From contig CBFFSA010000002.1 of assembly GCA_965644495.1 (NCBI GenBank), positions 1,364,001-1,428,000 on the forward strand: a stretch of 64,000 nucleotides of DNA, written 5' to 3'. This DNA comes from Perkinsela sp. CCAP 1560/9 (Eukaryota > Protista > Euglenozoa: Kinetoplastea). The notes beneath the pieces were generated by a model. The model searched no databases. It was not told the DNA's origin and saw only the letters and a program-made list of their open reading frames with translations. Of this stretch, positions 6,093 through 37,794 are shown piece by piece. The position numbers were made by a program, and so were the translations under genes. Positions within the stretch are counted from its first letter, which is position 1. Every line of letters starts with the position of its first letter.

Positions 6093-6609
6093 TAGGAGAA
6101 AGGCATAGAGAGAGAAGAGAGAGACAGAAGGAAGAGTCGTGTTATTATAGTTGTTATACAGCAGCACTACTATACAGTTTTATATACCCCCATTTATGTC
6201 ATATTGCTACAGTTTTTCTGGGAGTACAAAGTGGGTGAAAATGGAAATAATGCCTGTTTTTAAGAGATACAGTATAACGTCTCCCCGTTTAAGCGCACAC
6301 GGATATCCCCCTTTTAAGCGTTCATTGAGCTGAGGTGCAGACGAAGGTGCAATTTTTTTTAATGTAGTAATTCAGACCCTCCTCTTTTTAAAATTTAAAC
6401 GCTCGTATGAACTCTACGAGTGTGAGTGAAAGTTTCATTGTGAAACACAGAGCAATACAATGCAGATGTGCTGTAGTGTAACATCTTTTAAGTATACATC
6501 TCTTAAGACACAGATGTACAGATGTAGTATGTGAATGTGTTGCGGAGTAAAGTAAATCCAGTAGAGTGCCTACCTTGCTTTACATACTCGTGAAGATTTT
6601 TTTGTGACG

Positions 6610-8175
6610 TTAAACTGCACGACTTCGCTGACCATGACTTTCTTTTTCATCTTTCGAATGATTTTTTTGAACCTTCAATGACTTAGCGGTCGCCTTATCT
6701 GAACTGGGGAGGTAGTATACTATGTTGCAATATTTATCACGGACACGAATTGTTGAGCCCACAGCAACGTGGCCCTGGAATTTCTGAAAGTAAACGTGAT
6801 TGATGGTGACGTGTAGCGGGATAGGGTAGACAAAATTGGATTCAGTTGGTTTCAATGAGGAGGGTTCAGACGTTGCAGGAGGTTTCTCGTGTATAGCCTC
6901 AGGTGAGCTTCGTGACGAAGAATTAGCCGAAGGGGGACTTTTTTCTCGTAAAACACCGGAGGGTGGGTGCTCCAGCCTTGACGACATATTTATTGCGCAG
7001 CTCGTTTTCACGTTACTCGGTTGAGAACTTGATATTGACAGACCGACTTGTATTTTATCAGTTTTCCATTGGATATCCCCATTGGATGTCAAGCTAGTGA
7101 GTTCCACCTTGTGATTTAATTTTTCTTTGGAGTTTAACTCATATTGTGTATCTTCTTCAGATAAAGTTTGAAGTTCGTTCTTTTTACCGGCAGGGGAATT
7201 CGGACCGCTTCCCTGCTGCGAATTTTCTGATGATTTCAAGCCTGACAAAGGCTTTTCGTGCGCTTCATCGGAAGATAATGAAGAAGATAAATTTCGGTCT
7301 TTTAATCGCTGAAAGGCGGGCTGCGTATTCAGGGGTGTATAACGCAAGTGAGGTGGTAATAGAGCTGGACTCTTCTTTGTCACTTCAAATTCCTGACCTT
7401 CCTGGCTCCAACCAGTATCGCTAGAGAGGGCAGAAGGCCATGGCTCCTCCGCAGATGTGTATAACCAGCACGCGGGGTCGCTGCGGACCTCAACGATGTT
7501 ATAACGCTCGCCTTCTTGACTCACCAGTTCCTGTTTCGGATCCGGGCCTGTATCTTGGCCGTCTATCACGAAAGTATAATAGTGCATCCCAACGGGGAGT
7601 TCCAGTAAGACATAGAACTCATCTTTGGATTTTATCATGGGCAATGGTCGCCAGCTCGAAAATGATCCCATTATACTCACGTACCGTGCATCGGTTCCTT
7701 GATATCGCAACACAGTAGGCATTACTGGAATATATTCCTGACCAGATTTGTTCGTGAGACCTTGTGCTATTTCTGACGCTTCCTTGGGATTCTGTTCCGC
7801 AGCATGTTGAATATCCGCCTCGCCAGAGGCGGAAGGGCAAGGCAAACCATTTTGATGGTCGTCAAACGCAGTTTTTTGCGTTGCCGGAACTGAAGTTGGA
7901 AATTCTCGGATGATTTCATTATGTTGCAAGTGGTTTCTCGTGGCTCGCGGTCCCTCCTGAACTCGATTGAGCTCCGAGTAATGTATTGCACTAGACAATG
8001 CCGGTGGAACTACCCCGTCTAACAGCGCGCTGTTCTTAGGGCTCTGCGCTGCCAGTCGGTTTATGTTTATAGTCGATAATCCTCGTCTTCCTCTGCTGGT
8101 GGGTGCTGTGGGTGGTGTCCCCCTAGCGCTACTCTTTTCCGCCGGACTGCGAAGATCGCTCGAGGTTTGACCCAT
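6610..8175 (-). CDS. AMPK/SNF1 beta regulatory subunit
   Basis: N-terminal MGQTSS (myristoylation-type), carbohydrate-binding module (VSIMGSFSSW...YTFVIDG), PALLPPHL and C-terminal HVTINHVY...RVRDKY. Confidence 0.88.
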   Translation of the reverse strand: MGQTSSDLRSPAEKSSARGTPPTAPTSRGRRGLSTININRLAAQSPKNSALLDGVVPPALSSAIHYSELNRVQEGPRATRNHLQHNEIIREFPTSVPATQKTAFDDHQNGLPCPSASGEADIQHAAEQNPKEASEIAQGLTNKSGQEYIPVMPTVLRYQGTDARYVSIMGSFSSWRPLPMIKSKDEFYVLLELPVGMHYYTFVIDGQDTGPDPKQELVSQEGERYNIVEVRSDPACWLYTSAEEPWPSALSSDTGWSQEGQEFEVTKKSPALLPPHLRYTPLNTQPAFQRLKDRNLSSSLSSDEAHEKPLSGLKSSENSQQGSGPNSPAGKKNELQTLSEEDTQYELNSKEKLNHKVELTSLTSNGDIQWKTDKIQVGLSISSSQPSNVKTSCAINMSSRLEHPPSGVLREKSPPSANSSSRSSPEAIHEKPPATSEPSSLKPTESNFVYPIPLHVTINHVYFQKFQGHVAVGSTIRVRDKYCNIVYYLPSSDKATAKSLKVQKNHSKDEKESHGQRSRAV

Positions 8176-8477
8176 TGCTATAAATTTTTGTGTACCTAGA
8201 AAAAGAGCATTTTTGTTTCGCTTCCCACTTTGCGGTAAATATTGTTTATACTAGTATACCAAATTTAATTTATATTGTATGAATTTTAAATTATAGTACT
8301 AGCACCCCTCTTTATCACTGTATACTAAATCACTGTATACTAAAACAACGTAGGACTACTGCTGTAGTCTTGGAGGAACCAATTCCTAGAAATTTCGGTT
8401 TCTATGTACATGTAACGTGTCATGTTGATGTGATGTACAGTTAAGATGTAATACCACTAAAATCTTGATGCCTTGGG

Positions 8478-9221
8478 TTAATATACTCGAATTTTGGTAC
8501 CCTGCACGTACCTGATACTCAGACAAGGGGGTAGTTTACTAATAATCATGTCACCCATAAGTTCCTCATTTCGATAAAGAAGAATCCTCTCCAGACCTTG
8601 TGGAAGCATGTCAAAGCGTACCATTCCGGAAAAATTGTTCTTCGCCAAGTTTAGCACCTTCAGATTCGATGGCAGGTGGCACAAATCAATCTCTCCACTA
8701 AATTCGTTCTCTGAGATGCGGAACACGGTCAAGGGAGGGGGGAGTACTGTGAGATCAACGGGGCCTGATAAAGTATTTTCCCAGAAAACAAGAATTTGAA
8801 CTGTGTGTGGCAGAAACTTCCACTGCAGTACACCGCGTAACTTACGACTGCGTAAGTCCACTTTTTCGACCTCCAATTGATCGTTACACACTATGCCCTC
8901 CCATTCACATACAGATACCTCCTGTGACCAAGATGGGACCGGATTCGTAAGATCTTGAGCAAATTGTTGAAGTAAAAATTCTGCTGGAAAAACGTTACCT
9001 CGAACTTTTCCGAGACGGACGCGAGGATTGACATCCGCTGAATTTGCAGGACGGGAAAACATAGGATGAAGTAATCTGACAAAAATTACACTACTTTGTT
9101 GGTACATTAGTAATTTGTAGGTAAAACCGAATAAAGGTCGAATTTCCAGTTGAAACACATTCATAAGAAGGGATGTATGGTATATCATATGCCATACATG
9201 GGTACTACGAATTACGTTCAT
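8478..9221 (-). CDS. Leucine-rich repeat protein (start probably downstream of 9221)
   Basis: CEWEGIVC LRR N-cap followed by NxLSGxVDLxxLP repeats. Confidence 0.85.
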   Translation of the reverse strand: MNVIRSTHVWHMIYHTSLLMNVFQLEIRPLFGFTYKLLMYQQSSVIFVRLLHPMFSRPANSADVNPRVRLGKVRGNVFPAEFLLQQFAQDLTNPVPSWSQEVSVCEWEGIVCNDQLEVEKVDLRSRKLRGVLQWKFLPHTVQILVFWENTLSGPVDLTVLPPPLTVFRISENEFSGEIDLCHLPSNLKVLNLAKNNFSGMVRFDMLPQGLERILLYRNEELMGDMIISKLPPCLSIRYVQGTKIRVY

Positions 9222-9263
9222 GCTATAATCTAATTGAGGGAAAGTGTATTATACATTACCGTT

Positions 9264-10943
9264 CTACTGCGACGCCTCCATCGTGCTCCCTTCTTCGTTC
9301 TTCGTCAAATGAGTATTGGAAAAGTGAGAAAGATAATCCAAAGTGGGAATCGGACATGCTACATCTACGTCATCTTCCTTGGAGACCCCACCAGAGATCT
9401 CAGATTCCGTTTTTGTTTCGTTTGTACTTTCCGCGACCGACTCCTTTAAGCCTTCGGTGTCCGCCTTCTTGCCCTCCTCATCGCTGCCGGGGACTGCACC
9501 TGTGCTGACGAGTACCTCCGAGGCATTACAGACGGGACCCACGGTACTAAGACACAGACTTCCGGGGCGGTAGTATCGATTCATTACATCCCGGATACGC
9601 TCGGAGCTCACTGCATCGACGTGGGTGAAATATTCCTCAAGAGAAAGACGTTTGTCGGCGTGCAGGAGCTGACGTCCAATATCTTCCGCAATATTGGTGG
9701 TGCCATCGACGTTGAGTACCAGTGCAGCTTTCAGGTTCGACTTGGCAAGCTCGAGATCGCTGTCGGAGAGGCGGGTGGAGCACAACTCGGAGAAGAATTC
9801 CATCACGGAACGGAGGTGGTGCTGGACGTTGTTCTCCTGGGGGTATCCGATGAGATACACCCCCATGAGACCGGAGTCAATGTACGGGGTGAAAAACGGG
9901 TTGAAGGTCTCTATCCGGGGATCGGGTTCCAAAACGGAGCCGCCGTCTTCGGTGGGGAAACGCATTGCAAGACACTGAGGACTACGAAAGCGTTGTTTCG
10001 ACATGAGGTCTCGATTGACACGGTTGTAGCTCCCTAGCAGATGCTGCACTACCTGCAAAGCGAAGACGTCTTCACTGGCTATCCCACAGGTCTGGAAAGC
10101 GAGTGCGAGGTGCAGTGCGGGAAGCTCTTTGGACCACAACGTGTACTGCCCACCGGTGTAGATCGCTGCGTGATTCTCCCCACGGTCGCATTTCGGAGAC
10201 AAATCTCCGAAATACTGGGAGGCCAGGGTCTCGAGGGACTTATGCGTGACACCTCCGGCCCCAACAAGCACCATGCGGGGCCCTGTGTAGTGCTGATCCA
10301 CGAAACGCACTATCATGTCTCGGTTGATGTGAGTGGAGATGTTCTGTTCGGGACCCAGAATGGTGAGACCCAGACTGCAGTCCCGGTACGCTGCGATGTG
10401 AAGATGATCCATCACGACTTCGTCCACCAGAAGTTCTACCTCTCGCATTTCTTCTAAAATGGTCGATCTCTCGCGTTCTAAATCTTTCTCTGGGAGTTTG
10501 CTGTTTCGTAGGATGTCGGCCAGAATGCTAACCGCGTCCGGGACGTACTTTTTGAACACTTTAACATAATAGCTAGTGCGATCTCGTGCGGTGTATGCGT
10601 TCAAATGTCCTCCAATCTCTTCAAACTTGCGCTCCAGCTGTGCTTTTGTCATCGAACGTGTGCCTTTGAAGTTCATGTGCTCGAGAAAATGTGCCGTGCC
10701 GTTGATCTCCGGCGTCTCATAGCGGCTTCCGGCATCGATCCACACCCCCACAGTGGCTACTTCACTTTCTGGATGCTCCTCACATGCGACGCGAAATCCA
10801 TTTGGTAGTCGCGAGATGGTCGTAGGCGGGACTTTGTTGAGGATGTGACGTACAGACTGGGTGGGGGCAAAACCGGGCCGAGGAAAGATGCGTGGAAGAC
10901 CTTTCAAATTTCCAATAGAAAGCAATCGACAACAGTAACGCAT
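9264..10943 (-). CDS. PMPCB: Mitochondrial processing peptidase beta subunit (M16)
   Basis: GVWIDAGSRYE, GTAHFLEHMNFKGT (HxxEH zinc motif), basic presequence-like N-terminus. Confidence 0.92.
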   Translation of the reverse strand: MRYCCRLLSIGNLKGLPRIFPRPGFAPTQSVRHILNKVPPTTISRLPNGFRVACEEHPESEVATVGVWIDAGSRYETPEINGTAHFLEHMNFKGTRSMTKAQLERKFEEIGGHLNAYTARDRTSYYVKVFKKYVPDAVSILADILRNSKLPEKDLERERSTILEEMREVELLVDEVVMDHLHIAAYRDCSLGLTILGPEQNISTHINRDMIVRFVDQHYTGPRMVLVGAGGVTHKSLETLASQYFGDLSPKCDRGENHAAIYTGGQYTLWSKELPALHLALAFQTCGIASEDVFALQVVQHLLGSYNRVNRDLMSKQRFRSPQCLAMRFPTEDGGSVLEPDPRIETFNPFFTPYIDSGLMGVYLIGYPQENNVQHHLRSVMEFFSELCSTRLSDSDLELAKSNLKAALVLNVDGTTNIAEDIGRQLLHADKRLSLEEYFTHVDAVSSERIRDVMNRYYRPGSLCLSTVGPVCNASEVLVSTGAVPGSDEEGKKADTEGLKESVAESTNETKTESEISGGVSKEDDVDVACPIPTLDYLSHFSNTHLTKNEEGSTMEASQ

Positions 10944-11222
10944 TTTTGTAGCTGAGAAATGAGGTAACTAGTAATACGCGAATAAGAAGATTGTTGAAAA
11001 CTATTTACACAGTTAGTAGTATAAACTACTAAAGGGCCTTGTACGATTAAATTACGGTTAAAGGGCCTTTTACGATAAAATTACATGTTATCATCCGTGA
11101 AGACACTACATAATTTCGTTCACAAAAGTAATATTTTTGATCTCGGTAAACACGTATATTTTGAACAAAGTAACGTCAAAATCTTCACTCATCGAGAGTT
11201 GAGAGGACATCTGTGCAGTACG

Positions 11223-14075
11223 TCACACACTTGCTTCATGCTCAGGATCCTTTTCCGTGAACACAATACCTTCCAGAATTCGGTTCTTTGCCACGGGACG
11301 GACGGCGCTAGGCGGGAGTTCGGCACGGTCGGAAGACTGCAGCACGACAGGTGAGTTTTGAGTCTGAAACCCTGTAATCCTTTTCGGTTTTCCCGCCATT
11401 GCAACCGTATCTACTGCCGTCCCTACTCGTACAGGTTGCTGTTCGAGCGGTTTCCCCTCACCATCGACCAAAATCAGATGTCTGGGACGCATAGATGCCG
11501 CCAGGCTCATCCACAGATACGAATATTTCGCAACGCTTACCTCAGGGGTTAGCATGGAGAACACAGCGGTGAGGATACCACACAGTGAGGTAGAAGAGGC
11601 GAGTAGGCCATCACTGTGAACGGCTCGTAGCGTCATCTGCCCTTTTCCTAACTCTACCAGACCTAGTGCGATGTGACAGAGCAGCCAGCACTCCGGGTTG
11701 CGTACGTGAAAACCACAAAGCGAGCGCAGCATTGTGGCCGCACGTACACTCCGGGTACCTGCCCCAACAAGTCCAATGGCAAAGATCGCGGCCTGAGCGG
11801 TAGCCGCGTCGGTGTCATGGCTGAGCTTACTAAGGCTTTCGAGCACGGTCACATGCGGATCGGAGAGAGATAGCAAGGCGATACATAATGGAAGGGCGCG
11901 GCGTGCGTGAAGATCCCCAAAGTGGAGGATGTGGTCCAATACCCGACAGGCAACCTCACGCCCAATATTCTCCCCGAAGGCAACAAGGCCGATGCCCAAG
12001 GTCGCGATCGTGTGTGGGCGGAGAAACAAAGAAACCTCTTTCGAAGACTTTGGTTTCCGTACGCCCCGCCTCGCGGGTTGTCCAGATATCAGAGTCGCCA
12101 AATCCGGTCCTTTTGCGGATCCTTCTTTGGGTTTGACATCCTCGGCGGGGGTACCGGCCTCCTCACTTGGTTTCGGGTCCGTATTTTCGTTATGCTTCAC
12201 CTTTGAGTCAGATTCTTTGTCCCTTTTATCTTTGCTCAGGGTTTGTTTCGTCCCTTCTCGTATCAAGTGAAGTAGTTTTTGTACAATCAGTACATTGCCT
12301 GTACCCGCATATGCCAGTGCCGTCAGTAGAGTCTCAATGAAGACGCGAACCTCGGATGATAATGTGTGAACTGTGCTCAGAAGAGTCTCGACTCGATCTT
12401 GCTGTCCTAGAAAAAGTAATCCGAGTCCAAGGATTAGATAGGGCGCTGTGAAATTTTCAGTAAGAACTGCAGACTCCTTCTCCATGAGACAAAGAAGCAT
12501 GGTTTCCACGAGATCCTCGTGCGCGGTGCCAACAAATACGAAGCCGAGAGCTAGTGCTGCAAAGGATTGCAGACTAATGTCCATGCTAGAGTCAGCCACA
12601 AATGGGACTAGGATGGACAGAATTTGTTCACTTCGTGTCCCTGCGTACGCGAGTCCAAGTCCCAATATGGAACACATTCGAATCTCTGTATTTTCAACGT
12701 ACAAATTTTCCGTAAGCAGTGATAACGCGGGATCAAACTGGGAGCACACTCCGTGGCACACCACCCCAACACCCAGCGCTGCTCCCGCCCGTATCCGCAC
12801 ATTCTCGGAGCTAAGATACTTCTCCAGGGCGTTCAACCCCTCTGTGGGATTTCCTAAGTGCAGTAATGCAACAGAGGCAACCGCCGAGATGACACGTTGC
12901 TCTCTTTGCCCATGCAGCCACTCATTGTCCTGCAGTGTAGTGAGTTTGTCGGTGCCAAATCCTGCATTGGAGAAACCACTTAGCAGAGTGTAGGCCAGGT
13001 GTCGGAGATAACGTGGGGTGTTGGATGCGTGCAGTGTGGTGCGTTGATCCATTAGATGTGGTTTCGCAACCTCCTCAGGGGCTTTTGGCTCCAAGGCGTC
13101 TAGCGCTTTGCTACAATGTAGAAAATACTCTGGGATTTTTTCCTGAAGGTCAGTCCACGCAGGACAACAGGCTACGAGATCATATGCCCCGTGACGGTTG
13201 CAGAGTATGAGAAGCTGCTGCTGTACCAGAGGGTCCGCGGCGGCGAGATCTAAAAGTTCTTTTGCTTTTTCGTGATCGGAAAGCTTTAATGCCATGCGCA
13301 TTGCATCATACAGTGCCCCGAAACTTTGGTACAATTCTCCACAATGTCGATATATTTTTCCGTCCTCTCCTTCTGGCAGATAGGGAGCGAGAGCCAGGAG
13401 GTAGTCACACGTACGAACATAGTTGTCCATGGTGCAGCGTGAAGTTAACAAGTCCATTCTGTCGATTTCCAGAAGTAGATCAACGGCATTCGGCTCTCCA
13501 TTGTGAGAAAACTCGAACTGAACAATTTCCTGCAATAGGGGAAGCAAGCTTTCACGGAGTTGGGTTTCTTTTTCTGCTCCTTTCCATGTAGTGACAAACT
13601 GAGTAGACAGTTGACGGACGTAGTGGTGCCCCCAAATATCCAATGCCAGAGTTCCTTTTCGTTTCCAATCAAGACACTGTGTCTGTTTTTCAGCCGATGG
13701 AAATGCCATCGAAAGTATCGATAAGATATCACTTAGCCGCTGTAAGAAATTTTCCGGTAAACCTGTATTCGGTATTTTTGAAAGGGCTTCGTAGCGCTCC
13801 GTGAGTGAGGGAATATGAGGTCGCAGATACTTCAGAGGTTTCGGAATTCCGGTCAACGAATTCGAGTATGTGTCACGCATCATACTCCCAAGTTGATCCA
13901 CTGCGCTAGAGGCTATCTCCAGATTACTGTCCTGAATACGAGAAACACATAAATCCACTCCCTCCATAATTCTTATGTCTTCATCCGAGAGCGTTGATTC
14001 TTTCTTATTAACTCCTTGATCTTCATCTTTACCTGAGCGATTTACTTTCTTGCTATCTTTTTCTGGTTTGGCCAT
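11223..14075 (-). CDS. RPN1: 26S proteasome regulatory subunit Rpn1/PSMD2
   Basis: SLTGIPKPLKYLRPH, PC repeats, VRVGTAVDTVAMAGKPKRITGFQT. Confidence 0.95.
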   Translation of the reverse strand: MAKPEKDSKKVNRSGKDEDQGVNKKESTLSDEDIRIMEGVDLCVSRIQDSNLEIASSAVDQLGSMMRDTYSNSLTGIPKPLKYLRPHIPSLTERYEALSKIPNTGLPENFLQRLSDILSILSMAFPSAEKQTQCLDWKRKGTLALDIWGHHYVRQLSTQFVTTWKGAEKETQLRESLLPLLQEIVQFEFSHNGEPNAVDLLLEIDRMDLLTSRCTMDNYVRTCDYLLALAPYLPEGEDGKIYRHCGELYQSFGALYDAMRMALKLSDHEKAKELLDLAAADPLVQQQLLILCNRHGAYDLVACCPAWTDLQEKIPEYFLHCSKALDALEPKAPEEVAKPHLMDQRTTLHASNTPRYLRHLAYTLLSGFSNAGFGTDKLTTLQDNEWLHGQREQRVISAVASVALLHLGNPTEGLNALEKYLSSENVRIRAGAALGVGVVCHGVCSQFDPALSLLTENLYVENTEIRMCSILGLGLAYAGTRSEQILSILVPFVADSSMDISLQSFAALALGFVFVGTAHEDLVETMLLCLMEKESAVLTENFTAPYLILGLGLLFLGQQDRVETLLSTVHTLSSEVRVFIETLLTALAYAGTGNVLIVQKLLHLIREGTKQTLSKDKRDKESDSKVKHNENTDPKPSEEAGTPAEDVKPKEGSAKGPDLATLISGQPARRGVRKPKSSKEVSLFLRPHTIATLGIGLVAFGENIGREVACRVLDHILHFGDLHARRALPLCIALLSLSDPHVTVLESLSKLSHDTDAATAQAAIFAIGLVGAGTRSVRAATMLRSLCGFHVRNPECWLLCHIALGLVELGKGQMTLRAVHSDGLLASSTSLCGILTAVFSMLTPEVSVAKYSYLWMSLAASMRPRHLILVDGEGKPLEQQPVRVGTAVDTVAMAGKPKRITGFQTQNSPVVLQSSDRAELPPSAVRPVAKNRILEGIVFTEKDPEHEASV

Positions 14076-14208
14076 CAAAAATAACGTAAATATAAAGGAA
14101 AAATGCTCTTTACGTTACGGTACAATGACATGCTTCCCGTTTATATTCTTTAACGTAGCTTTACGCACAATATACACACCACTAAAATAAAAATGAATGC
14201 AGAATTGT

Positions 14209-14985
14209 TTAAAGACCACATGACTCACCGAGCAGTCCGGTGCCATCACTCGTTGCCTCGGTATTTGTCTTATTTTCTGTATCCTGTCGAGATAAATATT
14301 TCTTAAAGTACCATGACCTCCTTTTCGAGACCTGTTTCCAGTAATTGTGCAGATGGGCTTGCGTCCGGCTGTAAAACGAGCTCAGGCTCTCCTCCAGAAT
14401 CACCGTCATCGCGGGGGCGCTGACGCTAAAATACATTTCCTCAGCTTGGAGCGCCGTAACGCTTTGCCCTTTTTTCCGCATCGCGTGGACGTGGCTCTCC
14501 ACCTGGCGGTAGACATTCTCCGTGTACTCTGCCGGGGGCTTCCAGTCTAGATCCACCCACTGGCCTTGACTAAACCCTTTAATCTGGGGGTAACGCAGCA
14601 GCGGCCGCGTGGCCTCCGGAAGCCGCTCCTTTTGGATTTCATAGAAGTGTAGCCGCGGGTAGTGGCTCTCGAGTCGGTGGCAGAGATACTCCAGTACTTT
14701 TCCCATCGCGTTGCATGCGGTACAGTTCTCCTGGGAGTACTGTGCAACCATAACATCCGAGGAGTGGGCGTAGTGCTGGAGCAGACGTCGTAGGACAAAC
14801 TCACTGGGGACCACACGGACGCATTTGGTCGGGAATTCCGCGTTCAGGGGGTTGATACCCGCCCCCTCACGGGCGTAGTCACTCGTAGCCCCCTGGGGAT
14901 TCGCCGTGTTGATGGTCTGGGACTTCATCCAAAGCTGGCGGAAGAAGTCAGAGTCGGATCCAGGTGGCTTGAAGTTGGAGCTCAT
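14209..14985 (-). CDS. Hypothetical protein with thioredoxin-like CxxC segment
   Basis: 258 aa; VMVAQYSQENCTACNAM followed by FYEI...YPQIKGF resembles thioredoxin-fold spacing. Confidence 0.6.
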   Translation of the reverse strand: MSSNFKPPGSDSDFFRQLWMKSQTINTANPQGATSDYAREGAGINPLNAEFPTKCVRVVPSEFVLRRLLQHYAHSSDVMVAQYSQENCTACNAMGKVLEYLCHRLESHYPRLHFYEIQKERLPEATRPLLRYPQIKGFSQGQWVDLDWKPPAEYTENVYRQVESHVHAMRKKGQSVTALQAEEMYFSVSAPAMTVILEESLSSFYSRTQAHLHNYWKQVSKRRSWYFKKYLSRQDTENKTNTEATSDGTGLLGESCGL

Positions 14986-15216
14986 TTTGCCATTTACAGT
15001 TTAGAATGAAAATGTGAAAAAGTGAGAAGTGCGTAATCCGATCAGTGAATCCCCAAGCCAACACTTTCGCTAAATATTTTACATGTCAGTATTTTTAATT
15101 TACGATACTAGATGGTCAATACATTCATAAGTAAGGATCTTATATGTTCATTTCATCTTTACTTGGACCATTACTTCCCTTCCTTTTGTCTTTTCTTCCA
15201 TCCTTTCAAGTCTTCT

Positions 15217-15672
15217 TTATGCCACCAAGGCGCTTGCGCTTCCGGATTCGTATCGCCACGTGGCCGGAAGCTGCTTCGTACGTTTGTAGTATCGTGCCAG
15301 ACGGTGAATACGGGATTCGACCAAAATCAGTCGGAACTTGGTATCCAAATCCTTTCGGTTCTTCTCCAGGTGCTTACGCATGGACACGGCTTTACGAATC
15401 ATGTGGTACAGATCCTCCGGGATCTCAGGTGCCAATCCCTTGTGCTTCAGAATACGAAGAATCTTACGTCCGGTGACGGATTTGACTTGTCCGATTCCCT
15501 GACTGTCTCGCAGGTGGGTGCCGATGGCCGACGGGGTGAGTCCCTTACGGGCGAGTGTTGTGATTTGCTGCACCACCTCACGTGCGGTTGTTTTCAGCCA
15601 CGTAGGAACGGCGCGACGGTAAGGGAGAGAGCTTCCGCTAATTCCCTTGCCATTTCCGTGCATGCGGCCCAT
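15217..15672 (-). CDS. RPS13: 40S ribosomal protein S13 (uS15)
   Basis: [12 protein letters not shown]...[16 protein letters not shown]; 151 aa. Confidence 0.98.
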
Positions 15673-15921
15673 GATGTGAGATGTGAATAATTAATAATGA
15701 GCGTCGAAAAAAATCTACAGAAAAAACAATGGGTAGGTGATTCAAATTGGTTTACTAAAATTTCGAAAGCAGAAACTATCTCCACCGTTTACTAGTTCTG
15801 TGTTTATATGGTATACCTAATCAAGAGTTCATAAAAAAATGTATCACTGCCCAAACAATTGTCATAAAGGAACATCAAGTTTGAAATGCAAACTTTGAAT
15901 ACCGGAATTCTCACCCTATAG

Positions 15922-16923
15922 TTAAAACTTCCGTCGCCTCTTTCTTCCCGTGTATTTCGTATCCGGCCGGGTAGGCTCCCCGTGGATGCGTCGCAACTCT
16001 TTTTTCATCCGGATCCACGCCCGAGTCCCTTTCAATGGACGCCCAGAGGAGGACGCACCTCGAACACTTTTCTGAACACGAACCGTCTTTTTCGACCCCT
16101 TCCCCACAGCTACCCTCTCCTCCCCGTCTTCTGCAGCCCTCTCAGAACCACTCCCCTCCTCCTCCTCCTCCTCCTCCTCCGTACTACACCCCAACACCTC
16201 CTCATCCACCACTCTCTTCCGTTTCCTCCCCCCTCCCTCCCCCCTTTCCCTCCCCCCCTCCCTCCTCCCCGGCCGCGTCATCAGCACCAGGAACACCTTC
16301 CGTGCCCGCGTGCTGTGCGGGTGGTCCACCACCACCCCGCCCCCGAACCCCGCCCGGGTCGCGGCACGGGTCACCAAGTCCCGCTGCGCCGCGCTCTCCG
16401 GGTAGAACTGCACCACGGCCCTCGCCCCGGGCCGCAGCACCGCGAAGAGCGTCGCGAAGAACCGGCGCAGCCTGCGGTGGGGGTTGTGCCCGGAGGCGTC
16501 CGCCCCGCACAGCCACTGCACCGCGGAGATGCTGATGGCGCCATCGAAGGTGGCGGGGCGGAAGGGGAGGCCGGCGCCCAGGTCGTGCCGGAGCAGGCCC
16601 CCGGGGTCGTGGTGGGGGGGGAGGGACTGGGCGGCGCGGAGCATGGGGTCGCTGAGGTCGAGCCCGAGCCAGTGGTGGCCGGAGTCCCGGAGGACGGCCC
16701 CGCTGAGGCCGGTGCCGCAGCCGAGGTCGAGGAGGAGGCGGGGGGGGGAGAAGGAGGAGGAGGAGGAGGAGGAGACGGGGGGGAGGGCAAGGAGTTCGGT
16801 GGCCCGGATGGCGAGATCGCGTTGGACTTTGGTGAGATGGGAGGAGGTGTGGTATTTGTGGGCGTGGTCGGGGGTGTAGATGAATTCGGGAGGGGCGATG
16901 TGTTCGGGGCGGCGTCCGACCAT
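15922..16923 (-). CDS. BUD23: 18S rRNA m7G methyltransferase Bud23/WBSCR22
   Basis: RPEHIAPPEFIY, LLDLGCGTGLSG, FDGAISISAVQWLC, C-terminal KYTGRKRRRKF; ATG at 16923. Confidence 0.95.
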   Translation of the reverse strand: MVGRRPEHIAPPEFIYTPDHAHKYHTSSHLTKVQRDLAIRATELLALPPVSSSSSSSFSPPRLLLDLGCGTGLSGAVLRDSGHHWLGLDLSDPMLRAAQSLPPHHDPGGLLRHDLGAGLPFRPATFDGAISISAVQWLCGADASGHNPHRRLRRFFATLFAVLRPGARAVVQFYPESAAQRDLVTRAATRAGFGGGVVVDHPHSTRARKVFLVLMTRPGRREGGRERGEGGGRKRKRVVDEEVLGCSTEEEEEEEEGSGSERAAEDGEERVAVGKGSKKTVRVQKSVRGASSSGRPLKGTRAWIRMKKELRRIHGEPTRPDTKYTGRKRRRKF

Positions 16924-17242
16924 GGAGGGGGGAAATAAAAGGAGAGAAGGAGGAGAAAGGTTTTCTTCGCTTTGTGTGGGTTTTTGGTTTTTGGTGGGTG
17001 AAGGAAAGGGGGATGAAAAGGAGGATGGGAAAATAGATTTGGAGAGGAGATAGCAAAGGAAAAATTGCGTGCACTTGTACATAAATGTAGCAAAGCGGAA
17101 CCGGGAAAATATACAACGTACAAAGTTTACAGATTTTAAGCTATTCATACATAACATTTACGTGTATAAGCACAGCAAAAGAAAACACGTATTACGAAAT
17201 AAAGCAAGAACATAGAACAAATGTACACTTTGCATGATGCGT

Positions 17243-28165: not shown

Positions 28166-29476
28166 GGGTAATGCCCACTTATATTGCACCCACTTTTCAA
28201 ATTTTGTGTACCTTTTTTTTCTTATGGTTACTTACTCTCCAGTTGCCTAGAAATATTTGTAAGATAAATTTTCAAAAATGTGTACCTGCGCAGACCTTCG
28301 ATGCATTCTTCGGTGGAAGAACGATGCAGATCTACCCGCGTGCTTCGCTTCATTTTTGAAAGCTCATAGCGTTGTGAAAAATGAGCTCTGTACTACGCAC
28401 GGTACGCCAGGAACTCCCCACAAAAAAAATTATTCATTGTGCATCTGTTGGCGACGCAAGGGCAATAATAAGTGCCGAAAGCGTCTCTCGACATTGTCAC
28501 CTTTTTTTTCAGCCAAACAAAAAAAACCCGAATCAAAGTTCCTTTTTTGGGTGAAACTGTGCCAGAGAGTTGAAATGGACAGCATAGCCTCCCAATGTTG
28601 CGTAACTCGAAATACAGTTTTTAAATGGAAACGCGAGCTACTGGATTGGATTTCGAAAGCGGTGGCAAAGCGCAACGAGGAAACAAAATTTCATAAATGC
28701 GCAGCAGACGAAACTCTCACCTTTTCAAGCACTCTTTTCAAGGCTCTCACCACAAGCAGACGAAACTTTCTCTTCCCAAGAAAATATCATCAAGGTAGCG
28801 CGAATCGTAAAAAAACAATATGCATGGCCACCATCACGGGTATCGAGAGAGACGGGAGCTGTGGAAGAACTATATGGAAGCGTGTGGAAAAGCGAGATGC
28901 CTCCACGCTACCAAATCTGATAAGGAAGTATACGGTAGACAGCTACCGGTCCATCGCAAATACAGACGGATTGCGTGGCTACCGAGGACTAAGCGAAGTA
29001 CGAGAGCACCGAACTGTGAACCACCGAAAAAAGGGTAAATACCGCTTCGTCACCGAAAATGGCGTACATACCAACAACGCAGAATCTTGCCATTCGTCGG
29101 TCAAGCGTGCGATACGAAGGCAAGGAAGACTTTCTATGGACCCAGAAAAAGCTGAAAAGGTAGTATCACTCTATACTTTATTTTTTAAGAAAACAACATG
29201 GCAACAACGTCTGCGGGCTCTCCTCGTCGCCTTGAAGTCAATAAAGAATGAAGTGGAACTCGAAGGTATTGAGGAAACCGAAGGGTCTGGTGATGAAACT
29301 CCATCGGATGCAACCGAAGACGATCTGACTTTGAGTATGCTGCAACACTTTTTGATGTAAAGTAAGCGGAAAGAGCAAATGAGGTAAAGTGAGCAAAGTT
29401 ACGCTGCACAAGAAAAAATTTCAGTACCTTCGTATTATTATTTTGAAAGTGGGTGCAATATAAGTGGTCTGTACCC
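28166..29476 (+). mobile_element. Merlin (IS1595/ISXO2-like) DNA transposon, full length
   Basis: Imperfect ~38-bp TIRs (gggtaatgcccacttatattgcacccacttttcaaaat / attttgaaagtgggtgcaatataagtggtctgtaccc); perfect 8-bp TSD gttacatt at 28158-28165 and 29477-29484. Confidence 0.95.
28278..29360 (+). CDS. Merlin/IS1595 DDE transposase
   Basis: ADET...RKYHQG, NTDGLRGY, HRTVNH, GVHTNNAESCHSSVKR; N-terminal Cys/His motif and HTH. Confidence 0.92.
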   Translation: MCTCADLRCILRWKNDADLPACFASFLKAHSVVKNELCTTHGTPGTPHKKNYSLCICWRRKGNNKCRKRLSTLSPFFSAKQKKPESKFLFWVKLCQRVEMDSIASQCCVTRNTVFKWKRELLDWISKAVAKRNEETKFHKCAADETLTFSSTLFKALTTSRRNFLFPRKYHQGSANRKKTICMATITGIERDGSCGRTIWKRVEKRDASTLPNLIRKYTVDSYRSIANTDGLRGYRGLSEVREHRTVNHRKKGKYRFVTENGVHTNNAESCHSSVKRAIRRQGRLSMDPEKAEKVVSLYTLFFKKTTWQQRLRALLVALKSIKNEVELEGIEETEGSGDETPSDATEDDLTLSMLQHFLM

Positions 29477-30113: not shown

Positions 30114-30299
30114 ACTTCTATAATTAGAATTTCGATGATTAAAAAAGAACGTATAACTAATTGCAGTTGAAAAAAGATATTTTATTTATAAAAGGATTTT
30201 CTATAGACGCAAATAAGCAAAATTTCCTGTTGGAGTTTCTTGAATCACACTTATTCTGAAATATTTAAGAAACTACGACATTAATTTCCCGCCATCTCA

Positions 30300-31089
30300 A
30301 TGCCGGAAAGTCAGCCCTCCGTTTCTGACGTCATGCGTCAGCTGTCGATATTAACTTCGAAATTCGAGTCTAGCGCGAGCCAACTTCAGAGTTTGCAGGA
30401 AGGAATGCTGCATTTGCAATCTCAAATGGGGCGTTTGGACCGTATGGAAGGCAATCTGAGCCGCTTAAGTACGCAAAATAAAGAAGCTTTACAAATGGTG
30501 GCGCGCGCGTCCGACTCGCCGTCTGCTTATGATATTTCCATCCATGACCTGCCACAGGAACACGTTTTGCAGCCGGAACACTGGAAACCCGAGCATTACT
30601 GTTCTGACAATTTGCGTCGACAGCTCCTCCAACGCGTAGAGCACGAGGTGCGAAAGCTCTTCGGAAACTCTGCGGATCCGACTGCTGTGCCAGGAGATTC
30701 TATTGGTCTAAAAGATGCATTAGACACTATCCAAAGTCACTTGGAGGCTTGCGACGAGCTGGTGAAACGGGGCCAGGCAGTTTCCATGAAGTCGATTACT
30801 CCGGCGATCGAAAACGTCATTTTCCTCAGATACAAACACAAGTGGGGTCGGCGTGTCGCGCTCCAATGGAAAGATGCTCTAAAAAGTTCGCCGATCGGGT
30901 TCAAGGTATGACAATGCTCACGACACCGCTATGGAGTTTTACAAGAACTGTTCGATCGCTCAGGGCGCAGTGTCTCTATCGCAGGCAAAAAACGGCGGAG
31001 GGCGCGGGTTCGCTTCCAGTGGGCGAGGGAGAACCCGCGGGCGCGGAGGTCGCAGTTATGCATCTCCGGCTGCTCCCCCGTCCCAGTGA
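30300..31089 (+). CDS. Gag-like ORF1 (coiled coil plus RGG tail), one apparent +1 indel at 30883-30908
   Basis: Track ORF 30300-30911 has a heptad-rich N-terminus. The +1 frame continues SRYDNAHDTAMEFYKN...GGGRGFASSGRGRTRGRGGRSY to TGA at 31087-31089. Confidence 0.7.
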
Positions 31090-33408
31090 CGGGACCCCGG
31101 GGCCGGACGACCCCTGTCGCGGTACGGCTGTTCGGGAGGCCGTGCCGTGGAGAAAGTAAACTGCCCTGGTCCCGGCCAGGTCCCGATCAGAGATTATATT
31201 TTAGGTCACGATCAGATTTTGAAAAACATAATTTATATAGAGCTTCCGGAAGACGTGTTAGACAGCTGCGTGCGACGAGCGGAAGACATTTTCCGCGAAA
31301 AGTTTTCTCCTGGAAATCATTCCAAAGTTTTCTCCTGGAGATCATGAAAAGAATATGGAGGAGATTCGTGAGTTTCGTGGAAGGAGTCCACACCTTGGGA
31401 TATGTGCTAGACGAAGAGAGAATGCTTGCAGCTTTCGCTCTCCATCTATACGACCAAGAGAAGGTAAAAGGTCAAACGGTGGTACAATACCTGTGCCATC
31501 TGGTAAACGAGTACTCGTTCTCGGGGGTAAAACTGGATATAGCTCGAATAGACGCTTTGAAAGCGGCCATGATGAGGAGGGCCACTCCCGCTATAAAGGC
31601 AAATCCTATGACCCACGAACAAGTAATTCAATTTTTGGATCAACCGCAGTTAACAGAGATCAAAAAAACGTTCGTGATGGTTTATTGGCTCAGCGGACAG
31701 AGACCTGGAGAACTGTTAGCTCTGGACGTAGACGAAGTGTCAGTGACTTCCGAGGCGAACGACGAAACTCACATGGATGCTAAGTCATACCAAGAATGTT
31801 ACGAATCAGGAAAGAAGTACTCCGCGCTGCATAAGAATGGTGGTCCCGCTGGTCTGGAGAAGGACAATTCGGACGTCTCTGTGGAATGCTCGCCGGTTAG
31901 GTCGCGAACAGTGGTTCGAGGGAGTAGAATTGAGAACTCTAAATCTCGCCTTGAAGAAATTACCGGCGGCGCTGAATCACCCTCGACTGAGAGACCGTTT
32001 CAGTCTATATTCCATTCGCAGGGGAGCGCTCCAACACATGGCGGCTTTGGAAGTCTCAGCGCAAGACATTCAATGTTTGACTCGGCACGTATCGGAAAAC
32101 TCTCTCCGGGCGTACCTGGGATCCTATATGGATCCGAAAGCGGTAAAAGGTCTGGAAGTGTCCAGACTATTAGGACAACCCGCTCCCCTGTATTCAGAAT
32201 TTCCTGTAGAAGAGAGTCGAACGACTACGTTGGAAAATACTCCGCGGACCCCATCAACGAGGGGGTCGATCATCGAGATCGATTCACCTCTCCCGGGGAC
32301 CCAAATTTTCTCCAGGTTAATGGAGAAAAGGGTTCCTTGCGAAATGAGGCAGGCGGACCCATCGGAGCAACAGGACAGTTTTATACCCGTGGACTCACCT
32401 GTCGAAACGACGAGTTTAAACCCCCCCTGCTCGAACCACCAGAGGTTCGAGACACCCCTGTATCAAAAGGTGGCACGAGCATTTCCGTTATCAAACCTGT
32501 TTCCACATTTTCCCCCGCCCGACAAAGTGTCAATATTGGCCAGAAGCGTTCCTGTTTCCACCGTACCGGAACTCACTACTCCGTTTTCCGAGAGCCCTTG
32601 CAAACGAGATCAAAACCATCGATTCCCATCAGCACTACGAAACCTGTTTGGAACCCCCCCTCCTTTTCAATTGCTTGCCACCCCCGTTTTCGGGTCGGCC
32701 CCCCAGCAACAGGGTGTTCGAAGTCAATTACACTTTCCCCTTTCCCCTTGCCCTGTCCAGCCGAAGATCAATCGGGAAACAGATGCTCCAGTCCAGGCCT
32801 TATTTCTAGCCACGACACCACGGACAGAAAGCCCAGATCCGATAAGGACCCCCTCTGCCTCGCGGTCCGAGGTCCCTCAGGAAGATACTCCGGATCCGAG
32901 GGGGGTTTCTCCTGCCCCTCGCGCGGCTACATCACATCTGAAGACGCTGGGTCAGGGGGAATGTCCGCATGCTCTTCGGGAAGCAACCCCATATCAGGAA
33001 GCATCAAACCGCGCCACCCCACTTCTCACACCCGGTTTCGCCACCCCGCCGACCCCGTTCAATTTCCTGACGTTTCAGGATGCAGATCATTGGACCCCAC
33101 CTCCGCAACCAACGCCGCCACCAAACCCCGCCTCAATAATTCATTACGATCCCCCGCCGCAGATAAAAAGGCACAGAGTTCCTGCATACCTGTACAACCC
33201 AACGGGGACGGACTACGCGTCCCCAGTTCAATCACGAGCGAGATTCAAAAAAGCCAAACTGGACGAACAAGAGCGGCAACTGGCAAAAGCGGAACAGGAG
33301 GATATGGAAGCTTTAAGAGAGATGGAGACCGATATAGAGCGGGACCTACATGTCCCAACAAAAACGAAGCGATCACAGATAGTGGAGCCTGCGTCGCCGC
33401 ACCAATAG
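31090..33408 (+). pseudogene. Tyrosine recombinase ORF2, frameshifted twice in this copy
   Basis: KRIWRRFVSF and WLSGQRPGELL (first Arg) sit in the 31086 frame. SHTKN, SLYSIRRGA, LTRH and LRAYLG (catalytic Tyr) sit in the 31777 frame. The likely N-terminus is in the 31147 frame. Confidence 0.85.
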
Positions 33409-34991
33409 GTGTCGGCACCTCGCCATGGAAAGTATTATATGAGTTCGCGTCATACGGGTATGCGCGTTCCGGAAAACTTTTTAGCGAGAGAAACATACAG
33501 AAACCGCCGCAATGGCCTTTGGACCCGATGCCAGCGACGCGTTTAAATTTAGAATTATTAAAAAGCCTAGCACAAGCAGAACACCTGGAAGCTGAAGTCA
33601 ATATATTAAAATACTTAGAAGATGAACATTTTAGCAGTTTGACGTGTACAAAATGTACACCTGTCTACAGTGGCGAATCCAAGTACCTCGCCCCCTTTTT
33701 AGGGGATTTAGTGAAAAGTGGTATTTTGAAACCATTACCGCGTCGAAAAGCGAAAATCTGGATGTCAGCGTTTCTAGTTCCAAAACAGAGAAAACGTACC
33801 TTAAGAGCGATACTAAATGCGATCCCACTGAACGAGATACAGGAGATGGTTCCCGGACCATTAGAGCTTCCGGGGTTATCTGACATTGCAGACATGATTC
33901 GGAGGCACGACTTTTTCTGCGAAACAGACGGGAAGAGCTGGTACAATCAATTCGATCTTCCACAAGCGGCGTTACCATTCTTTGCGATTCGTGTTTCGGG
34001 TCGCACATACGCTTGGTCTACATTACCCATGGGGTGGAAGAGTTCAGTGAAGATCGCACATGCCGCTACATCCATTCTTCACCATTTACCGGGAGCTAAA
34101 AGTGAAACCTTGATGTTCATTGATAATGGCTACCGGTTCTCAAATTCAACAAAGGACTTGGAGAACGACATCGGTGAAGTTTTAGTAAGAGCAGAAAAAG
34201 TCTCAGCCACTTTAGTCGTTACAACACCGCCGCAAGAGGCGGGAACCATTTTAGGCGTTCAGGTAGATCTATCTCGAAAGACCCTTTGTTTACCCCGCGA
34301 ATTTATTGAGAAGTTGGTAGCTTTGCGCAACACGTTTGAAACTCTTCAACGAATCCAATCTAGGCCCTCACATCGCTTAGTGTGGAAGGTACTGGGAACT
34401 ATTTTTTGGGCCGCACGAGTGCTGGGGATTGCACAATGCGACTACATAACGGTGATGCTATGGATTCGCAACAGAGCCCGGTTTCTTTCTTGCAATCCGA
34501 TCTACTGGGACAAGACCTGCTGGATGCGACCGGAATTTGTTACAGCCTTGATTGAACTCCTAAATCGTATCGAAATCAACACACCCCGGAGCGTTGGAGA
34601 GTCAGCAGATGAAAGTGAGCGTATCTACGTGGACGCGTCACAGGGCAGATGGGGTCTCGCCTGGTGGGAAGCAGGGAATCTACGAGATCGCAGTGGTATT
34701 TTTCCCTCCTGGTTGAAAGAGAAGCCAATCGCCTATAAAGAACTGTATGCTGCTGAGATGGGTCTGAAGGAATGTAAAGAACGAAAATTAAAAAATGTGA
34801 CCATTATCTCTGACAACAAGAATGTAGTATCATGGATGTCCCGCTGGTGCGCGGGTCCTCCTCTTATTATGTCGTGGTTGCAGCGTCTGCGAAATGATTA
34901 TTATGTGAAGGGCACGTTCAGGGAAATCATCTGGACAAGTTCGGATACAAATCTAGCGGATGCGCCATCCCGACGGGGAGGATCAGCCTAG
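31760..34991 (+). CDS. Reverse transcriptase + RNase H ORF3 (domains from ~33700; 5' boundary approximate)
   Basis: FLVPK...LRAILN, ETDGKSWYNQF, LPMGWKSS, FIDN; RNase H YVDAS, KELYAA, ISDN, NLADAPSR. Confidence 0.92.
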
Positions 34992-35108
34992 ACGGAAAAT
35001 TGCTATTCGTGAAAAGCGACGATTAAGATAAACTTACTGGAATTTCTATAGTTTCGCTTGGATACAGCAACCAAATCCGTCGAACCGGAGGACGACCAAC
35101 ATGGTTAT

Positions 35109-36437
35109 ACACTTATTCTGAAATATTTAAGAAACTACGACTTGAATTGAATATAAGCTTAGTACTAACGAACAGAACTGTATTACGTTATTGTGTTATT
35201 CTCAAAGTAGAAACTGTTCCCAACAGTGAAATTTTGGCGTCTACCTCATTTAGCACATCCTTTTGGTATCTATATTTTCTTCTTCGCTCGGCATGTAACT
35301 CAGACGCTATGGAAAAAGACATTTTATTTATAAAAGGATTTTCTATAGACGCAAATAAGCAAAATTTCCTGTTGGAGTTTCTTGAATCACACTTATTCTG
35401 AAATATTTAAAAAACTACGACTTGAATTGAATATAAGCTTAGTACTAACGAACAGAACTGTATTACGTTATTGTGTTATTCTCAAAGTAGAAACTGTTCC
35501 CAACAGTGAAATTTTGGCGTCTACCTCATTTAGCACATCCTTTTGGTATCTATATTTTCTTCCTCGCTAGGCATGTAACTCGGACGCTATGGAAAAAGAT
35601 ATCTTATTTATAAAAGGATTTTCTATAGACGCAAATAAGCAAAATTTCCTGTTGGAGTTTCTTGAATCACACTTATTCTGAAATATTTAAGAAACTACGA
35701 CTTGAATTGAATATAAGCTTAGTACTAACGAACAGAACTGTATTACGTTATTGTGTTATTCTCAAAGTAGAAACTGTTCCCAACAGTGAAATTTTGGCGT
35801 CTACCTCATTTAGCACATCCTTTTGGTATCTATATTTTCTTCTTCGCTCGGCATGTAACTCAGACGCTATGGAAAAAGATATTTTATTTATAAAAGGATT
35901 TTCTATAGACGCAAATAAGCAAAATTTCCTGTTGGAGTTTCTTGAATCACACTTATTCTGAAATATTTAAGAAACTACGACTTGAATTGAATATAAGCTT
36001 AGTACTAACGAACAGAACTGTATTACGTTATTGTGTTATTCTCAAAGTAGAAACTGTTCCCAACAGTGAAATTTTGGCGTCTACCTCATTTAGCACATCC
36101 TTTTGGTATCTATATTTTCTTCTTCGCTCGGCATGTAACTCAGACGCTATGGAAAAAGATATTTTATTTATAAAAGGATTTTCTATAGACGCAAATAAGC
36201 AAAATTTCCTGTTGGAGTTTCTTGAATCACACTTATTCTGAAATATTTAAGAAACTACGACTTGAATTGAATATAAGCTTAGTACTAACGAACAGAACTG
36301 TATTACGTTATTGTGTTATTCTCAAAGTAGAAACTGTTCCCAACAGTGAAATTTTGGCGTCTACCTCATTTAGCATATCCTTTTGGTATCTATATTTTCT
36401 TCTTCGCTCGGCATGTAACTCAGACGCTATGGAAAAA
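35109..36437 (+). repeat. Tandem array, 280-bp period, ~4.75 copies (B 171 bp x5, A 109 bp x4, plus a 33-bp partial A)
   Basis: Units start at 35109, 35389, 35669, 35949 and 36229; only a handful of substitutions between copies. Confidence 0.97.
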
Positions 36438-36576: not shown

Positions 36577-37794
36577 GGTGGAATTGAACGAAGATTGCAC
36601 ATTTTTTCAAAAAATACGATTTTTTTTATATATTTTTTTAGTTTCTGTTTCTTGCTAAATACATAGATTAGAGTCTTTGCTAGTATTTTTGACTTTTTTA
36701 CGCTCTCAGCTACTGGTGAAATCATGATGAATGATTTGGATGATGGGTTTTGCTGCGGATGCCATGAGATGAACTGTTCTATACGTTTTCCGTTAAGTGA
36801 GGTGGGGCAATGGGATGACTTGAAGTGCCTTCACTGGCTTAAAGGGCACCATCTTGTAGCCCAACTTGTGAAGTGTGAGCGAGGCCACTCATTAACGACA
36901 TGTGTTGTTCAGAATGGTCAGTGGCAGTGCCCCATACGTACTTGTCGGGCCCGTTATTCCTTGGAATCCCCCCTTCTTCCTTCCAAGTCTAAGATCCCAC
37001 CAAAGCAACTAGTCATCGCATTGATCTGCTACTCGCGTTCAATGTAGGGGAAGCACATGGCCGAAGAATGCTTGTTTTCTGAGAGGACAGCGTGCAAATT
37101 CCGACAGACTATGGACCGCATCACTGCATGGGCCCATCAATATCGACGCCTGGAGGCGAACGGTAAGATTGACTACATGCAGGTTGATGAGACTTTTTTC
37201 CCCAAGATTAAAGTCGGAGGCCCGAATCGAAACCGGAGAGTGCGTCAGGCCGGTAGCGAGGTTGCTTAAACCTTGTGTGACACAACAAGGGGCGGAAAAC
37301 TTCGTGAAATCTATGTGACACCGGTGCCAGACAAAAAAGGCTCAACTCTGGTATCCCTCGTTGAGGAAATGGCTCGCGGGCCCCGTACAAGGATATGGAC
37401 AGACGGGGCGACGCACAACGCTCCTGGATTCGACGGCAAGTACCGTTGGAGTGAAGTTATTCACCGAAATGAATGGATAACTGAAGAGGGGGTGCACACT
37501 AATACTGTTGAGGGGGCGAATTCGATGCTAAAGAAAAGGTTAGTGTGTGAGGGGGGTAGTTTGGGTAGGTCAGAGTCTTCAAGAAAGGCACGACTCCGAG
37601 CCATAACTGAGAAGTGTAATGGTTCCTTACGGGTTCCAGAACAAAGCCCGTTGGTACGAGTTTTGTTGGATGTGGCGTTGTTTTGTGCGGAAATAGTCTT
37701 ATGTTCGTAGTTTTGATTTTCTTTGAAATTCGTTGATTTTTAGTTACTTTTAGGATTTTTTTTGAAAAGTGTGCAAAGTTCGTTCAATCTGACC
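36577..37794 (+). mobile_element. Second Merlin-family DNA transposon (different family)
   Basis: Imperfect TIRs ggtggaattgaacgaagattgcacattttttcaaaaaa / ttttttgaaaagtgtgcaaagttcgttcaatctgacc; perfect 8-bp TSD aaataagc at 36569-36576 and 37795-37802. Confidence 0.93.
36724..37710 (+). pseudogene. Merlin/IS1595 transposase with two in-frame stops
   Basis: Three same-frame ORFs broken by TAG 37045 and TAA 37267; QVDETFF, IWTDG, GVHTNTVEGANSMLK. Confidence 0.9.

Follow-up and report, generated by a model that had tools for sequence, protein, structure and literature searches.

Introduction

VIPER-like elements are a DIRS-order subgroup of retrotransposons in kinetoplastids, including Bodo saltans. 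They carry a gag-like open reading frame (ORF), a tyrosine recombinase (YR) ORF and one ORF for reverse transcriptase/RNase H (RT/RH) together with split direct repeats of the form A1..B1-A2-B2, and SIRE corresponds to A2-B2 (Ribeiro et al. 2019, PMC6681497). VIPER of Trypanosoma cruzi, other trypanosomatids and Bodo saltans and TATE of Leishmania and others share this order, with the gag-like protein in ORF1, YR in ORF2 and RT/RNase H in ORF3. Their YR and RT ORFs overlap, and they make no target duplications (2025 survey, PMC12278014). In their RTs, as in those of B. saltans, the position of the YxDD motif is taken by MIDN, LIDN, CIDN or YIDN (PMC6681497, supplement 16). Here we compare these systems with an element at positions 30170-36437 on the plus strand of a 64,000-nucleotide (nt) stretch of eukaryotic DNA, called the window in the following. 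The element is probably a VIPER-like (DIRS-order) tyrosine-recombinase retrotransposon, and its ends, like those of its relatives in the same genome, are marked by runs of A that point to a recombination core.

Two other systems offer points of comparison. Ngaro/PAT-like elements likewise have split direct repeats in the order A1..B1-A2-B2 and encode a YR instead of an integrase, and solo A-B repeats occur in genomes (PMC8547959). Their order, in contrast, is gag, RT/RH and then YR, and PAT has a methyltransferase; in the present element YR stands before RT, and the RT frame runs over the whole YR gene. The first-pass annotation of the window had likened the gene order to VIPER/TATE and the split repeats to Ngaro/PAT. 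Both likenesses are supported, but the position of YR upstream of RT excludes membership in Ngaro itself. For DIRS-1 and DIRS1-like elements, a circular intermediate integrated by the YR has been proposed, and a short junction oligonucleotide, a trinucleotide, is thought to end up on both flanks in place of a true target duplication (PMC7192593). DIRS-1 differs from the present element in its inverted terminal repeats, its internal complementary region, its methyltransferase and its trinucleotide core, which compares with a run of five to six A's here. The direct repeats and the lack of a methyltransferase also place the element outside the DIRS1-like and PAT-like groups. To our knowledge, the target choice and entry of DIRS-order and VIPER-like retrotransposons are known from models only, and none of these elements has a defined recombination site.

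Results

Repeat layout and junctions of the window copy

The window is C2:1364001-1428000 of a 21-Mb assembly of 110 contigs; other copies are named here by their contig. We compared three element families in this genome. Family 1 comprises the copies in the window, on C13 and on C3. Family 2 (77-80% nt identity) is found on C4 and in a quadruplicated segment on C29, and family 3 (about 51% RT identity) on C8, C25 and C31.

In the window copy, A1 is followed by the ORFs, by a'-B1 and by four units of AAAAA, A (104 nt) and B (171 nt), which repeat with a period of 280 nt and end at 36437 (Table 1). This is exactly the A...ORFs...a'-B-A-B-A-B-A-B-A-B layout given in the first-pass annotation, and the left, internal and right junctions also read as proposed there. 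The array units are 98-100% identical to each other, and A1 is 96-97% identical to the A repeats of the array (A2 to A5). The internal joints read CTATGG-AAAAA-GATATT, with GACATT in the first of them. Repeats and ends of the window copy are far beyond chance. Repeat analysis of the window revealed no terminal inverted repeat of the element, and an Rfam search at a permissive threshold with the element and six related loci gave no match.

Table 1. Features of the element and of the flanking transposon copies (window positions).
Feature	Position	Strand	Remarks
Left junction	30170..30175	+	A6 run between host flank ..gcagttg and A1; oligo-A also before GATATTTTAT at 8/9 independent 5' ends
A1, 5' split direct repeat	30176..30279	+	104 nt; last 33 nt recur as a'
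gag-like ORF1	30300..30911	+	203 amino acids (aa), cut by extra T at 30900; intact relatives 265-277 aa; no Pfam domain
RT-frame ORF	30912..34991	+	-1 relative to gag/YR; open across whole YR gene; RT-RNase H ~33411-34988; F-I-D-N replaces YxDD
A_AAA_AAC heptamer	30987..30993	+	gag register; candidate -1 frameshift site into RT frame (putative function)
UGA closing gag frame	31087..31089	+	C next; YR ORF continues in same frame; putative readthrough
YR ORF, broken	31090..33408	+	N-terminal domain ~31338-31775 one frame off; catalytic C-part and Pro-rich tail 31777-33408
a', copy of last 33 nt of A	35109..35141	+	directly 5' of B1; family 3 has an analogous 24-nt a'
B1	35142..35312	+	171 nt; from repeat comparison
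A2-B2 to A5-B5	35313..36432	+	four tandem AAAAA + A + B units; 280-nt period
Right junction	36433..36437	+	A5 run between ..CTATGG (end of B5) and host flank tcaagg..
Merlin/IS1595-type transposase ORFs	28278-29360 and 37273-37710	+	within flanking transposon copies

Oligo-A runs at ends and joints

We surveyed nine independent 5' ends and five independent 3' ends of the three families. The 5' ends begin with GATA(T/A)TTT, and eight of the nine are directly preceded by 5-13 A's; the ninth is preceded by nine A's and then C. All five 3' ends, which read ..(C/T)TATGG or ..GATAT, are followed by 5-14 A's. By comparison, AAAAA precedes only 0.44-0.49% of positions in the surrounding DNA. The internal B-A joints consist of five A's in families 1 and 2 and of six A's in family 3. 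The two flanks share the A-run only, and no duplication extends past the A's. The same termini recur at every other copy. Since oligo-A is found at 5' ends, at 3' ends and at the B-A joints alike, recombination within an oligo-A core appears well supported for these elements.

A distant relative from another organism is found as head-to-tail copies with a period of 5186 nt (L050; ENA ERZ25333236 ctg626, about 6400-17200). Here the equivalent joints contain a CCT/CTT run, and the first copy is flanked on its 5' side by a long (CCT)n tract. This example suggests that simple-sequence cores, each specific to its lineage, may be a general habit of the group.

The A-B array

The canonical form of the repeats, A1..a'-B1-A2-B2 with six A's at the B-A joint, is seen in family 3. 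On C3 and C4, the element stops after one a'-B and has no A2-B2. At the other extreme, C13:280180-313932 is a second copy of the whole window locus, which carries the same insertion; the 303-310 nt of flank that were compared do not differ. This second copy represents either the other haplotype or a segmental duplication. Its array comprises about 101 A-B units (C13:285461-313624, about 28 kb), compared with five B's in the window. Amplification to 5 and to about 101 units likely occurred by unequal exchange or by recombinase action between the repeated B-A joints. Unequal exchange accounts for the array, and the putative action of the recombinase between joints is an attractive alternative.

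Short solo fragments with the joint of B end, five A's and A start, or with an A start, are found at C22:125660-125771, C34:34264-34375, C38:43759-43901 and C7:41690-41764. They resemble SIRE or solo A-B repeats. As they are few, most A/B units adjoin an element, and the repeats do not occur mainly independent of the ORFs. In a 2015 run, presumed to be RNA, a 310-nt contig of the tandem A-B unit (window 35111-35390) has a depth above that of neighbouring host sequence. The array may be transcribed, as judged from this contig depth.

Coding content and decay of the window copy

The coding order in the window is gag-like ORF, YR, RT-RNase H. The first-pass annotation had read gag-YR-RT-RNaseH from the letters, and domain, profile and fold searches confirm it. 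It had also described the element as free of a methyltransferase; a Pfam search of all frames found no such domain. Its description as complete holds for the structure only, as three frame-breaking indels truncate gag and put the N-terminal domain of YR out of frame. We called these indels against a 98-99% identical copy on C3 and against the C13 copy. They are the extra T at 30900, an insertion of 17 nt that occupies 31320-31336 and the loss of 8 nt after 31772. The insertion and the deletion shift and then restore the frame, which results in a 1301-aa ORF that is a chimera of RT frame, YR N-terminal domain and RT frame again. The overlap of YR and RT ORFs is still present, with its frames scrambled by the indels. 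We considered homopolymer sequencing errors as the origin of the 17-nt and 8-nt changes and rejected them. The window copy is old (2-4% divergence) and unable to encode its own Gag or YR.

The other copies of family 1 are damaged as well. The C13 copy shares the 8-nt deletion in YR and has a stop codon in RT, which rules it out as an intact master. In the C3 copy, YR has lost 2 nt, and the first 884 nt of the element are found at a distance of 340 kb: the two pieces, C3:383100-383982 (+) and C3:40390-44643 (-), are broken at element position 883/884 and have opposite orientations. Either an inversion, another rearrangement or a misjoin has caused this split; the adjoining sequences gave no clue.

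Intact architecture in related copies

In families 2 and 3, gag closes at UGA-C and shares its frame with the YR ORF of 781-815 aa that comes next. The -1 frame holds the RT ORF, which begins some 190-260 nt upstream of the gag stop and continues without interruption through all of the YR gene, for up to 2.4 kb. The identical gag-UGA-YR/-1 RT arrangement, with shorter YRs, is found in L047 and L048, two relatives obtained by assembly of unrelated public runs. C29, C8, C25, L047 and L048 all have an RT frame that is open over the full YR ORF, and these five as well as C4 carry A_AAA_AAC or G_GGA_AAC in the gag register within the gag/RT overlap. From these conserved signals we infer that readthrough of the stop could give YR and that a -1 shift could give RT.

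The full-length reading covered the copies other than the C13 array and the copies on C29 and C31. Within this set, the C8 copy (L041, C8:704400-709800, minus strand) alone has all three ORFs open, with a gag of 265 aa, a YR of 815 aa and an RT frame of 1405 aa, in canonical A1..a'-B1-A2-B2 form. By its reading frames it is a candidate autonomous element. The four family-2 copies at C29:6655, 22052, 37472 and 50476 have a single identical 5' flank in common and lie 13-15.4 kb apart. They are a tandem segmental duplication that includes the element, not four insertions.

Recombinase and reverse transcriptase

Pfam detects the RT-RNase H region only weakly, in the 3' third of the long ORF (RVT_1, E 7e-5; RNase_H, 0.045). 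A profile built from 43 family members matches the Ty3 RT in the PDB at 5e-29, followed by caulimovirus (CaMV) and HIV RT. In Pfam searches with the 1301-aa ORF and with intact YR, gag and RT-frame proteins, nothing other than RVT_1 was significant, and the two halves of the window YR gave weak matches only (0.06 and 0.14). ORF1 contains no recognisable domain, and such a domain-less ORF1 is usual for the gag-like genes of elements of this type.

A PDB sequence search with the YR profile returned nothing. Because Pfam and this search are silent on intact sequences, the assignment of the YR rests on a fold search. An AlphaFold model of the conserved 328-residue YR domain of an intact homologue (predicted local distance difference test, pLDDT, 74) matches Cre/Tre across both domains (E 6e-10, template modelling (TM) score 0.63), and then XerA/XerH, lambda Int and integron integrase. 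In an alignment of six YR sequences, R157, R265, H288 and Y297 are invariant, the lysine is not, and the HxxR box reads Y-S-I-R, with Tyr for the first His, in all six. By this model, the YR belongs to the tyrosine recombinase superfamily with the two-domain Cre/Int fold, and the named residues are candidate catalytic residues. It resembles Cre and other simple tyrosine recombinases in this predicted fold and in the conserved candidate R, K, R, H and Y. It differs from them in the Tyr of the HxxR box, in a long Pro-rich tail and in being produced as one component of a retroelement. This Pro/Ser/Thr-rich tail makes up the YR ORF's C-terminal half (window 31777-33408 and relatives); it is little conserved and very variable in length. 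Complete YR ORFs measure 436 to 815 aa, and both overlapping frames are open through the tail in all intact copies.

Relatives

An exhaustive profile search returned 2106 RT relatives, and 622 of these score at E<1e-10. The three families invariably have FIDN, and xIDN or xVDN is carried by most of the 150 best-matching relatives. The nearest atlas clusters are from Euglenozoa. The sole organism named by cluster look-ups is the diplonemid Flectonema neradi, with two RT relatives, which makes the clade wider than kinetoplastids. In a tree of unnamed relatives, the three families form one clade, sister to the public-run sequence P0003. The RT is 52% identical to a match that is near-identical to our own family 3 and 49% identical to P0003, and the other rows of the 43-sequence alignment are at 20-36%. 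In word-indexed protein searches, the RT query and profile recovered one family-3 protein, which belongs to an ENA assembly, and a small number of weak matches to RTs. The YR query recovered three ENA proteins without a name, at 47-76% identity. None of these searches led to a named VIPER or TATE protein.

Locus and host setting

Every long host ORF in the window is on the minus strand. The host ORFs are intron-less and tightly packed in same-strand arrays. An island bordered by an MFS transporter gene and a MATE gene contains two Merlin/IS1595-type transposase ORFs and the element, all on the plus strand. The transposases belong to Merlin/IS1595-type DNA transposon copies with terminal inverted repeats on both sides of the element (28166-29476 and about 36583-37788). 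Among kinetoplastids, Merlin transposons are known only from Bodo saltans and Perkinsela (PMC12278014), and the host of the present element carries them too. Same-strand intron-less arrays, Merlin-type transposases and Euglenozoa as nearest taxa fit a non-trypanosomatid kinetoplastid. The antisense orientation to host genes that had been pointed out for the element is correct for the window copy. It is ruled out as a family rule, since the C8, C25 and C29 copies are sense to their neighbours.

Discussion

The recurrent junctions allow us to propose how these elements could move. Element RNA would encode Gag, a Gag-YR protein through readthrough of UGA-C and a Gag-X-RT-RNase H protein through a -1 shift at A_AAA_AAC. 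Reverse transcription would lead to a closed DNA circle, in which B is joined to A by a short oligo-A, as suggested by the internal B-A joints. The Cre-like recombinase would then cross this joint with a genomic A-tract. Such a reaction is expected to leave A's on both sides without any other duplication, which is the pattern observed, while its chemistry is conjectural. The canonical product would be A1..a'-B1-A2-B2, and in the window copy this has been amplified to five B's. The oligo-A pattern may thus follow the same logic as the junction trinucleotides of DIRS elements. The first-pass annotation had already suggested that a circle joined at B-A recombined with an A target. Its oligo-A part stands, as the run is common to the joint and to both flanks; the crossover is inferred from this pattern, and neither an empty site nor a circle was seen. 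A more far-reaching version takes the B-A joint as the true recombination site with an A-homopolymer overlap. The YR would integrate circles into any A-tract and would also excise and re-insert 280-nt A-B circles, by which the 28-kb satellite would have been built. We consider this version possible, though rather doubtful.

Several observations weigh against the picture as a whole. No empty site turned up in a genome search; apart from the C13 duplicate, which has the same insertion, the flanks occur only once. Contigs from public runs end at the junction, and they contain no flank-to-flank joint, circle junction or polymorphic insertion. The single a'-B ends of the C3 and C4 copies indicate that A2-B2 is not obligatory. 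In family 3, both independent copies have 14 A's at the 3' flank; this run could have been inherited, for example from a poly(A) tail, instead of being supplied by the target. The YR is not detected by Pfam on intact homologues. The placement near VIPER and TATE, finally, draws on structure and one motif and on a tree without named references.

The runs of A might have an origin other than a recombinase core. The RNA could be polyadenylated after B and give a linear cDNA with a poly(A) remnant; this would then be captured at A-rich DNA by microhomology, or its insertion would create an A-only target duplication through staggered cuts. Beyond the exact agreement of the two family-3 copies, the 3' runs often exceed the internal joint (8, 9, 14 and 14 compared with 5-6), and DIRS-1 amplifies via linear single-stranded cDNA (PMC7192593). 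However, A's also precede the 5' ends, for which a 3' tail alone gives no explanation, and every array unit has a fixed run of five or six A's at its B-A joint. No duplication is found beyond the A's. The elements encode a Cre-like YR, and neither an endonuclease nor a DDE integrase was found by Pfam or fold search. The CCT/CTT run of L050 cannot be a poly(A) tail. Together this makes an origin outside the recombinase core unlikely. The five-unit array, on the other hand, might be an assembly artefact, that is, a collapsed or expanded repeat. One and the same locus is assembled with five units on C2 and with about 101 on C13, and the depth of A/B relative to the internal part is unequal in the contigs of three runs (about 10x, 97x and 30x). 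Yet this depth is high in every run, which indicates that long arrays are real and probably variable in length. Furthermore, the window units are distinguished by point changes and are not one read copied, and in two runs a contig returns on itself after 280 nt. An artefact is therefore improbable.

With the oligo-A core as the preferred reading of the junctions, the question is whether its bearer is VIPER-like or stands apart from VIPER and TATE, as an independent assembly of a YR and an LTR-type (long terminal repeat) RT with a convergent layout. For a separate lineage speak the closest database relatives, which are unnamed, the RT identity of 20-36% to most of them, the two Flectonema RTs that widen the clade beyond kinetoplastids, and the relatives' tree, which holds no named VIPER or TATE reference. 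On the other side, ORF order, YR/RT overlap, A1..B1-A2-B2 repeats and the lack of both methyltransferase and target duplication fit the definition of VIPER-like elements, and xIDN is also present in the published VIPER, TATE and B. saltans RT alignments. The split repeats are canonical in family 3, amplified to B1-(A-B)x4 in the window and reduced to a'-B1 in C3 and C4. The solo A-B fragments are comparable to SIRE, and TATE has been reported in tandem arrangements. The YR length of 781-815 aa is nearer to TATE than to T. cruzi VIPER. Differences to VIPER-like elements are the 33-nt a' ahead of B, the low RT identity to most sampled relatives, the multiplication of A-B units, to 5 and to about 101, and the oligo-A junction or A-tract target, which is not described in the papers cited here. 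We regard a separate lineage as very unlikely. The term uncharacterised lineage, used in the first-pass annotation, was an overstatement, as all of the shared traits match the VIPER-like group (PMC6681497).

The element is otherwise an ordinary, decayed member of the described VIPER-like group and not a new kind. New with respect to the papers cited here are three points: the oligo-A junction and target rule that all three families keep, the expansion of the split-repeat unit to a satellite, and a conserved layout for putative double recoding by UGA readthrough and -1 shift. The growth into a long satellite is relevant to the assembly and annotation of kinetoplastid-type genomes. Three diverged families in one small genome follow a single rule, with a run of A's at the circle joint as well as on both flanks, and this association points to a short sequence where the recombinase probably crosses over. 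Together with the different simple-sequence core of a distant relative, it provides a concrete and testable recombinase substrate. If the A-homopolymer is the recombination site, it would be the first defined site for a VIPER-like recombinase, and arguably for any recombinase of the DIRS order.

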